DNA from: Piromyces finnis finn
Taxonomy: Eukaryota; Fungi; Neocallimastigomycota
Assembly: GCA_002104945.1 (NCBI GenBank)
Contig: MCFH01000015.1
Location: 434,001-498,000, forward strand
DNA length: 64,000 nt
Reading direction: 5' to 3'
Positions 10,090 through 11,935 of the stretch are shown here, one piece after another. Below the pieces are notes generated by a model, which had not been told where the DNA came from, made no database searches, and saw only the letters and a program-made list of their open reading frames with translations. Position 1 is the first letter of the stretch. Each line of letters begins with the position of its first letter. The translations under genes were made by a program, and so were the position numbers.

Positions 10090-11935
10090 ATGTTTGATAA
10101 TTCCAAGTATATTGAATTAATTTATGCTGATATTAAGCCAGAAGCAAATGATGGATTAAAATTCACTGGTGTTGTCAAGGTAATAATGGTGATAAAATTT
10201 CAAATAGAAATATATATATATAATATAAAAACATAAAACTATTATATTTTTATTAAATATATAAATGTATATGTATTATATATTTATTTTCCAAATGGAT
10301 TTTTTTTTTTATTATTCATATATTATATATGGATTATTAAATATAGATTAATGTTCAATCACTTGGTAAAAAAGAAAAGAAAGGAACTAATCATGAACAT
10401 AATGTTTACTTACATGTAAAATTATCTGATGGTTATGTTGTTGTAGGAAAGGTTAAACCATTCCGTTTACTTGCTAATAAAGATGAAGAAGTAAGAGATA
10501 GTTACAAACCATTTCATCCATTATATTTCAGATTCTCACATACTTCAGGTATATAATAATTTTAATTATTCAGGGATTTTTAAAATAAATATAAAAGAAT
10601 AAGATGTTAATTAATTATAAATTATTACTTTATTATAATACATAATAGGTGGTTTTGGAAGACCAAGAATGACCGAATTTTACTTAATGTAAGTTTTAAA
10701 ATTAATCATTAATTCATTAATTCATAATAATGATTCCTCCCTAATTTTTATATTGATATATTGATGTTGATAATATTCATTTATACAGTTATGAACATAT
10801 TCGTGTTATGCATGACGAAAGAATAAAGGAAAATTATTTCTTTAATTATAATGGAAGTAATTTAAAAATACCTAAACGTTTGGGTTGGATTAATCAAATT
10901 TATGGTAAGGATTGGCATCGTACCTTAATTTATGTTCGTCGTCCAACTTTACCAGGTCAAAGTGTATATATGATTGGTGCTCGTCCAAGTAGTAAAATGT
11001 ATTCTGCTACCCATGGTCAAGATGTACCAATTTATCATACAAATGTTATGGATAAATCAAAAAGATTAATTAGAGGTAGATATAGAAATAATTAGATTTT
11101 TTTAATAATTAACAATAGATTATATATTTTTTTTTCTTTTATAGATAAATAGGATACTAATTTGACATAACGTTATAATTTTATTTAAATAATTACTATG
11201 TTATCTAATATTATAATAGAATTTGATGATAAATTAACTTGGGTTCCATTGAGAAAACGTATGGGTAGCGATAATAAAAATATGCCATTAGGAACACCAC
11301 TTGACTGTAAATATTATAATGAATTAAGAAAAAAAATATGCTATTGCTAATGATAAATTAATCTTTTTTTTTTTTAAATATTTATTATTATATATTTTTA
11401 TTAATATATTCTTTTTATTACAAAAGGGACAACGGATGATCCAAATTGTGGTAATAGTTGGTTGGTTTCTGGTTATGGTTTTGATGAAACTAATTCAGAA
11501 TTGCATTTAGGTCCACATTACTGGCTTTTAGATATTATTGTCGATAGTTTTTACTGTGAAAGTAATGAAGAAAGTGAAGATGATTTCTATTATCAAGATG
11601 ATTTAGATGAATTTGATTTTGATCCATACAATTCTGATCATTTTTCTCCAAAATACAAAAGTTCTGGTTCTTATAATTTAAGAAATAAATATGAAGAATT
11701 ATCCTATCGTAAAGGTGGTAATGAAACTTCACAGTATAATGATGGACGTGGTTATACTTTTAAATTTAAACTTTGTGATGAAAATGGAAATATTGAAGGT
11801 TCCCATCTTAATGGAGGTGGTGGTTTAACTCGTGTCGCTCAATGTGGTATGATTAATATTATTGATTATGGTGTCCCTGGTTCTGAAAGATATATTCCAA
11901 TGGATGGTGTACGAAGACCAATTCGTGATTGTTAA
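10090..11935 (+). CDS. 404-aa protein: CBM21-like N-terminal domain + alpha-amylase C-terminal-extension (P. haloplanktis AHA-type) domain, no catalytic GH13 domain
   Basis: Six GT-AG exons (10090-10179, 10347-10548, 10649-10688, 10789-11075, 11220-11306, 11427-11935) join in frame, 1215 nt in total. C-terminal motifs: RTLIYVRRPTLPGQ, DDKLTW, GTPLDWTTDD, GPHYWLLDIIVD, VAQCGMIN. N-terminal motifs: FTGVVKINVQ, EFYLIYE, YFFNYNGSNLKI. The gene model is solid; the domain calls are from motif memory. Confidence 0.8.

Follow-up and report, generated by a model that had tools for sequence, protein, structure and literature searches.

A domain that extends the C terminus of marine bacterial amylases is found alone, without an enzyme, in a protein of the anaerobic gut fungus Piromyces finnis. 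The protein is encoded by a six-exon gene within a 64,000-nucleotide (nt) window of the P. finnis genome (assembly GCA_002104945.1, contig MCFH01000015.1, positions 434,001 to 498,000 of the forward strand; the window is this whole stretch, to which all coordinates below refer). Its 404 amino acids (aa) make up two modules, an N-terminal domain of ~135 residues predicted to be a beta-sandwich and a C-terminal domain homologous to the C-terminal extension of the Pseudoalteromonas alpha-amylase, with a predicted fold like that of the carbohydrate-binding module (CBM) family CBM20. On balance, we lean towards reading the protein as a cytosolic, non-catalytic binder or adaptor of a glucan, presumably glycogen.

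Profile searches place the C-terminal half within the family of amylase extensions. Exon 6 alone matched, among representative proteins, only the orthologue P0003 (404 aa) and one 224-aa protein, which bears GTPLDWTT, LGPNYWMLDVDMD and AQCGKINI. Sequence searches of Pfam, NCBIfam and the PDB with each exon, P0003 and the domain profile returned nothing above threshold, there is no Pfam model for the extension domain, and querying the ESM Atlas by features with exon 6 was unproductive. Exons 4 and 5 encode the greater part of what can be aligned of the domain, and its relatives surfaced with a profile of P0003 and the 224-aa protein, which recovered 75 proteins. Besides fungal orthologues, which form six clusters, these comprise alpha-amylases of family GH13 from Pseudoalteromonas, Shewanella, Colwellia and Thalassomonas, in which a ~190-residue extension follows the Alpha-amylase_C domain, GH14 beta-amylases carrying the same extension, metallophosphoesterases with the domain at their N terminus, and proteins in which it is flanked by a region without Pfam match and a Cys-rich tail.

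The relationship is also evident in direct comparisons. In BLASTP, the window protein matches these relatives with 45-70 bits over residues ~150-276 and in the AQCG.IN block, and a hidden Markov model (HMM) trained on just the 57 non-fungal copies detects its residues 151-276 at 55.3 bits. Nineteen columns are invariant in all 63 sequences (6 fungal and 57 other), the invariant elements being R-T at the first strand, N, LDWTT, G.G, W..D...D and CG; W235 and W267 (orthologue numbering) are invariant and are candidate binding aromatics. The C-terminal motifs listed in the initial annotation are all present in the order given there and coincide with conserved positions in the bacterial copies, and together with the profile, BLASTP and HMM matches and the invariant columns they bear out the resemblance to the P. 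haloplanktis extension noted there. A survey of 185,579 prokaryotic species genomes yields 184 stretches coding for the extension, and the best 80 of these 184 belong nearly all to marine Alteromonadales-like Gammaproteobacteria. In the ESM Atlas, a mollusc-dominated cluster matches the domain with a template-modelling (TM) score of 0.72.

Two architectures deserve separate mention. In P0030 and P0037, the extension domain lies N-terminal to a calcineurin-like metallophosphoesterase, a layout reminiscent of CBM20-bearing phosphoesterases such as GDE5 and laforin. P0010, P0014, P0019 and P0023 (395-699 aa) combine the Pfam-less N-terminal region, which is propeller-like by eye, with the extension domain and the Cys-rich C-terminal tail, and form one well-supported clade.

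The gene model is supported by splice sites, transcripts and orthologue starts alike. Joining the six exons (Table 1) yields a 1215-nt open reading frame (ORF) of 404 codons and a stop codon; the five introns (100-167 nt) all have GT..AG borders. The uninterrupted 1215-nt ORF also occurs in four independent Joint Genome Institute (JGI) metatranscriptome contigs from a close relative or sister species (~90% nucleotide identity), which align with the window, from position 10096 onward, in six collinear blocks whose ends are the exon borders. The 5' untranslated region of these contigs is 471 nt long, has a GC content of 14% and contains in-frame stop codons, which reach to within 21 nt of the ATG; the 404-codon ORF is the only one present. 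Of the 31-mers in the gene's stretch, four sequencing runs contain a share of 0.57-0.58, which equals the share that exons alone would give (1035/1816 = 0.57 by exon length) and further supports the spliced model. In the public record, the P. finnis protein is ORX52581.1 (300 aa), which is identical (100%) to residues 105-404; its start is a Met inside exon 3, and it therefore lacks 104 residues at the N terminus, those encoded by exons 1 and 2 and the beginning of exon 3. Full-length orthologues of 400-406 aa with a common start come from Anaeromyces robustus (ORX82140.1, 404 aa), Neocallimastix spp. and metatranscriptomes. The orthologue starts, the metatranscriptome contigs and the 31-mer fractions together establish that the 404-aa model is right over the shorter public one, which merits correction. 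By length, unaligned, the models from Piromyces sp. E2 (299 aa) and N. californiae (288 aa) are also shorter than these orthologues.

Table 1 Features of the gene and its surroundings in the window
Feature	Position	Strand	Description
Exon 1	10090-10179	+	Codons 1-30, ATG at 10090; 10096-10179 aligned to contigs L091-L094; the same Met starts the orthologues
Exon 2	10347-10548	+	Codons 31-98, ends in phase 1; transcript-aligned; not in deposited ORX52581.1
Exon 3	10649-10688	+	Micro-exon of 40 nt; transcript-aligned
Exon 4	10789-11075	+	End of N-terminal domain, linker, initial strands of C-terminal domain; transcript-aligned
Exon 5	11220-11306	+	...LTW... and GTPLD motifs; transcript-aligned
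Exon 6	11427-11935	+	WTT..GYG..GPHYWLLD, acidic insert, AQCG.IN, stop codon; transcript-aligned
N-terminal domain	10090-10861 (introns included)	+	Residues ~1-135; all-beta sandwich (predicted)
C-terminal domain	10904-11911 (introns included)	+	Residues ~150-397; divergent member of the amylase C-terminal-extension family, CBM20-like fold (predicted)
Acidic low-complexity insert	11549-11749	+	Residues ~277-343, loop of C-terminal domain; fungus-specific, predicted disordered
Open frame of 415 aa	14060-15307	+	Low complexity, Ser/Lys/Glu/Asp-rich; ~2 kb downstream of the gene

As the initial annotation had proposed, the protein carries neither an enzyme nor a secretion signal. Pfam searches of the exons and orthologues reveal no catalytic domain (no PF00128, no PF02806), and there is no signal peptide or transmembrane segment and no hydrophobic N terminus (maximum Kyte-Doolittle values of 0.69 and 0.74). 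No coding sequence lies directly upstream of the gene, nor do the metatranscriptome transcripts contain one, and in none of the metatranscriptome contigs is an upstream GH13 or signal-peptide exon joined to it. The gene is single-copy in the P. finnis genome (56.46 Mb in 232 contigs, 20% GC), and its orthologues are confined to Neocallimastigomycota, where they are strongly conserved across four genera (72-91% identity between genera). In one Logan assembly (P0078, from the cluster of the Anaeromyces orthologue), a copia-type gag ORF of 278 residues (PF14223) continues in frame as far as the normal start codon of the orthologue and into it; this fusion could reflect a retrotransposon insertion just upstream or an assembly chimera.

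These features bear on an account that descends from the early description of the Pseudoalteromonas precursor, in which the extension is a structurally independent propeptide, cleaved after export (PMC1766363). On this account, the domain would be a secretion helper or intramolecular propeptide without a ligand, and the fungal protein the remnant of a transferred amylase gene minus its catalytic part, in keeping with a single Atlas row that superposes both fungal domains on an amylase C-terminal region (TM 0.46). We regard this as highly improbable. The bacterial propeptide is reportedly unneeded for secretion (PMC1766363), the fungal protein has no signal peptide or passenger, its N-terminal domain is unmatched by Pfam Alpha-amylase_C, and the gene is intact, its conservation and expression contradicting the idea of an amylase relic.

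Fungal and bacterial copies share 25-32% identity. The fungal domain resembles the P. haloplanktis propeptide over the whole ~190-residue domain, with the 19 invariant columns in common, but it has lost three of the four conserved cysteines, which probably form disulfides, together with the small disulfide loop and gained an acidic insert. Only the cysteine of CG(K/M)IN is kept in fungi, the C....C loop being deleted and the MDC cysteine replaced, a loss that fits a protein residing in the reducing cytosol. The insert comprises ~65 residues in a loop of the C-terminal domain, is not in any bacterial copy and is predicted to be disordered, with predicted local distance difference test (pLDDT) values under 50 at residues 288-340 of the orthologue model. 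The fungal protein differs further from the P. haloplanktis amylase in that it has no GH13 domain, signal peptide or cleavable linker and in that an orphan sandwich precedes the domain in the same chain.

Phylogenetic analysis of the domain copies recovers the fungal clade as monophyletic (100% Shimodaira-Hasegawa-like approximate likelihood ratio test, SH-aLRT) on a stem of ~5.7 changes per site, with no identifiable sister group or donor in the tree; given this very long stem without a sister, no donor can be named. The bacterial origin suggested in the initial annotation is plausible and later intron gain is possible, although the tree itself cannot show origin.

Structure prediction points to the likely function of the domain. 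Models were made for the orthologue P0003 (82% identical to the window protein) and for one bacterial domain, the Pseudoalteromonas amylase extension P0041:490-678 (L011:3001-3567), which when modelled alone reached a pLDDT of 95.6 and a predicted TM score of 0.91. The Foldseek top 50 for this bacterial model are nearly all CBM20, CBM25, CBM26 and CBM41 modules, and the structural neighbours of the C-terminal domain are, without exception, non-catalytic modules. Against CBM20, 89-96 residues superpose at 2.1-2.8 Å with 16-24% identity, covering nearly the whole of CBM20. The predicted C-terminal domain therefore has a CBM20-type beta-sandwich, the fold also of STBD1, GDE5, glucoamylase, domain E of CGTase and beta-amylase, to which ~90 further residues are added, including the invariant DWTT and HYW.LD..D. 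Unlike CBM20, the domain is of double size, has no PF00686 match and matches no solved CBM in sequence. The fold nevertheless makes a link to alpha-glucans likely, in line with the role in glycogen or starch handling suggested in the initial annotation. A search for CBM20 sequences to use in a profile-profile comparison yielded none from five holder genomes and, among 151 Gammaproteobacteria, a single partial copy. CBM69 was considered as another candidate and set aside, as the solved sequence 5X5S (PMC10223318) is unmatched by the profile and the family is absent among the structural neighbours.

Several observations weigh against a glucan-binding reading. The predicted structure is that of P0003, 82% identical to the window protein, and its N-terminal domain is modelled with moderate confidence (pLDDT 47-70). 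Pfam CBM_20 (PF00686) matches none of the 63 domain sequences at E values up to 10, and does not match the orthologue; the family profile likewise finds no match among PDB sequences, so that what relates the domain to CBM20 is its predicted fold, at a middling Z score (~8). The Trp of the bacterial 'GWE' block, which we take to be a possible counterpart of a CBM20 binding-site Trp, is replaced by Ile in the fungal sequences of the alignment. Finally, polar residues (R, N, D, D, D, H) predominate among the invariant ones, which sit mostly in the extra elements and could serve a different ligand. The sandwich may then have a ligand other than an alpha-glucan, for instance a different polysaccharide, a metal or small molecule at the acidic/His cluster, or a protein, its likeness to starch modules being historical only. 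That the metallophosphoesterase and propeller-like partners are not obviously amylolytic would suit this alternative, as would the polar residues in elements that CBM20 lacks, the missing CBM20 sequence match and the exchanged Trp; we judge it unlikely, though it is the strongest of the competing explanations.

The same invariant columns could also be read as an active site, with the Asp/His/Arg cluster in the elaborated part of the domain acting on glucans or phospho-glucans. Nineteen invariant columns that include R, N and three D, with nearby H residues, amount to a conservation unusually high for a plain binding module. We nonetheless consider a cryptic enzyme improbable, given that the bacterial domain always stands beside an independent catalytic domain, that its structural neighbours are all non-catalytic and that no known catalytic motif or Pfam enzyme family is matched. 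The initial annotation had allowed for a new CBM or a new enzyme family: a new CBM family is a reasonable expectation, but an enzyme family finds no support.

The N-terminal domain was described in the initial annotation as CBM21-like, and this claim has fared unevenly. The N-terminal strings that it quoted are present in the 404-aa protein, the domain is predicted to be a beta-sandwich and CBM21 shares the top rank among its structural matches with others, but all tests by sequence or profile have failed. Pfam CBM_21 (PF03370) matches none of 16 orthologues at E values up to 10, the seven places that PF03370 picks out across the genome do not include this gene, and hhalign of the domain against the CBM21 places of the genome gives a probability of 0.5%. 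Language-model neighbours are weak (0.79-0.82), with starch-binding families in 6 of the 10 named rows. A CBM21-like nature is accordingly best treated as a lead and not as a finding. The domain is well conserved, with 87% mean column identity in 16 orthologues; a profile search found no sequence relatives beyond the orthologues, and a word search with the alignment of the domain returned orthologue fragments only.

The CBM21 domains of Rhizopus glucoamylase and of the glycogen-targeting subunits of protein phosphatase 1 (PP1), namely PTG, GM and PPP1R3B, remain a close known system for comparison. In P. finnis itself, the CBM21 places (C68, C2, C200, C112 and C174) comprise five canonical ones above the cut-off and two weaker ones in tandem. 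Two further candidates were rejected. DUF5889 gave a sub-threshold match to the N-terminal domain (best E value 0.0017), with no real member in the genome and no paper on the family found. The linker sequence KRLGW, considered as a PP1-docking RVxF site, departs from the consensus, having Leu at the position where Val or Ile is expected.

We therefore return to the reading of a cytosolic glucan binder or adaptor. Single copy number, strong conservation in four genera and the absence of a canonical CBM20 (PF00686) match in the P. finnis genome support it, and the amylolytic enzymes that accompany the domain in bacteria fit an accessory binding module. Anaerobic gut fungi store much glycogen, and STBD1 offers a precedent as a non-catalytic intracellular glycogen binder. 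The protein would thus be a cytosolic, non-catalytic pair of beta-sandwich modules specific to anaerobic gut fungi, in which the CBM20-like C-terminal module may bind alpha-glucan, most likely the cell's own glycogen, and the N-terminal sandwich may provide a second surface for a glucan or a partner. On glycogen particles, it could act as an adaptor or scaffold comparable with STBD1 (CBM20), plant PTST (CBM48) and the PP1 glycogen-targeting subunits (CBM21).

A broader proposal, which we put forward tentatively and hold to be possible but doubtful, is that the amylase propeptide domain constitutes an unrecognised starch- or glycogen-binding CBM family, an enlarged and distant branch of the CBM20 clan with a site of its own formed from DWTT and HYW.LD..D. 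Gut fungi would have recruited it, possibly after gene transfer and in fusion with a second, CBM21-like sandwich, to organise glycogen granules in the cytosol, a role specific to their lineage, and the protein would be an independently evolved functional analogue of STBD1 or PTST. In a limited search, whose outcome leaves absence unproven, no paper assigning the amylase propeptide to a CBM family was found.

These observations suggest a testable function, that of a starch-binding-like module, for a domain long held to be the dispensable 'secretion helper' of a model cold-adapted amylase. If binding proves true, the family would deserve a CBM number, with the fungal protein as a candidate Neocallimastigomycota-specific adaptor of glycogen granules.
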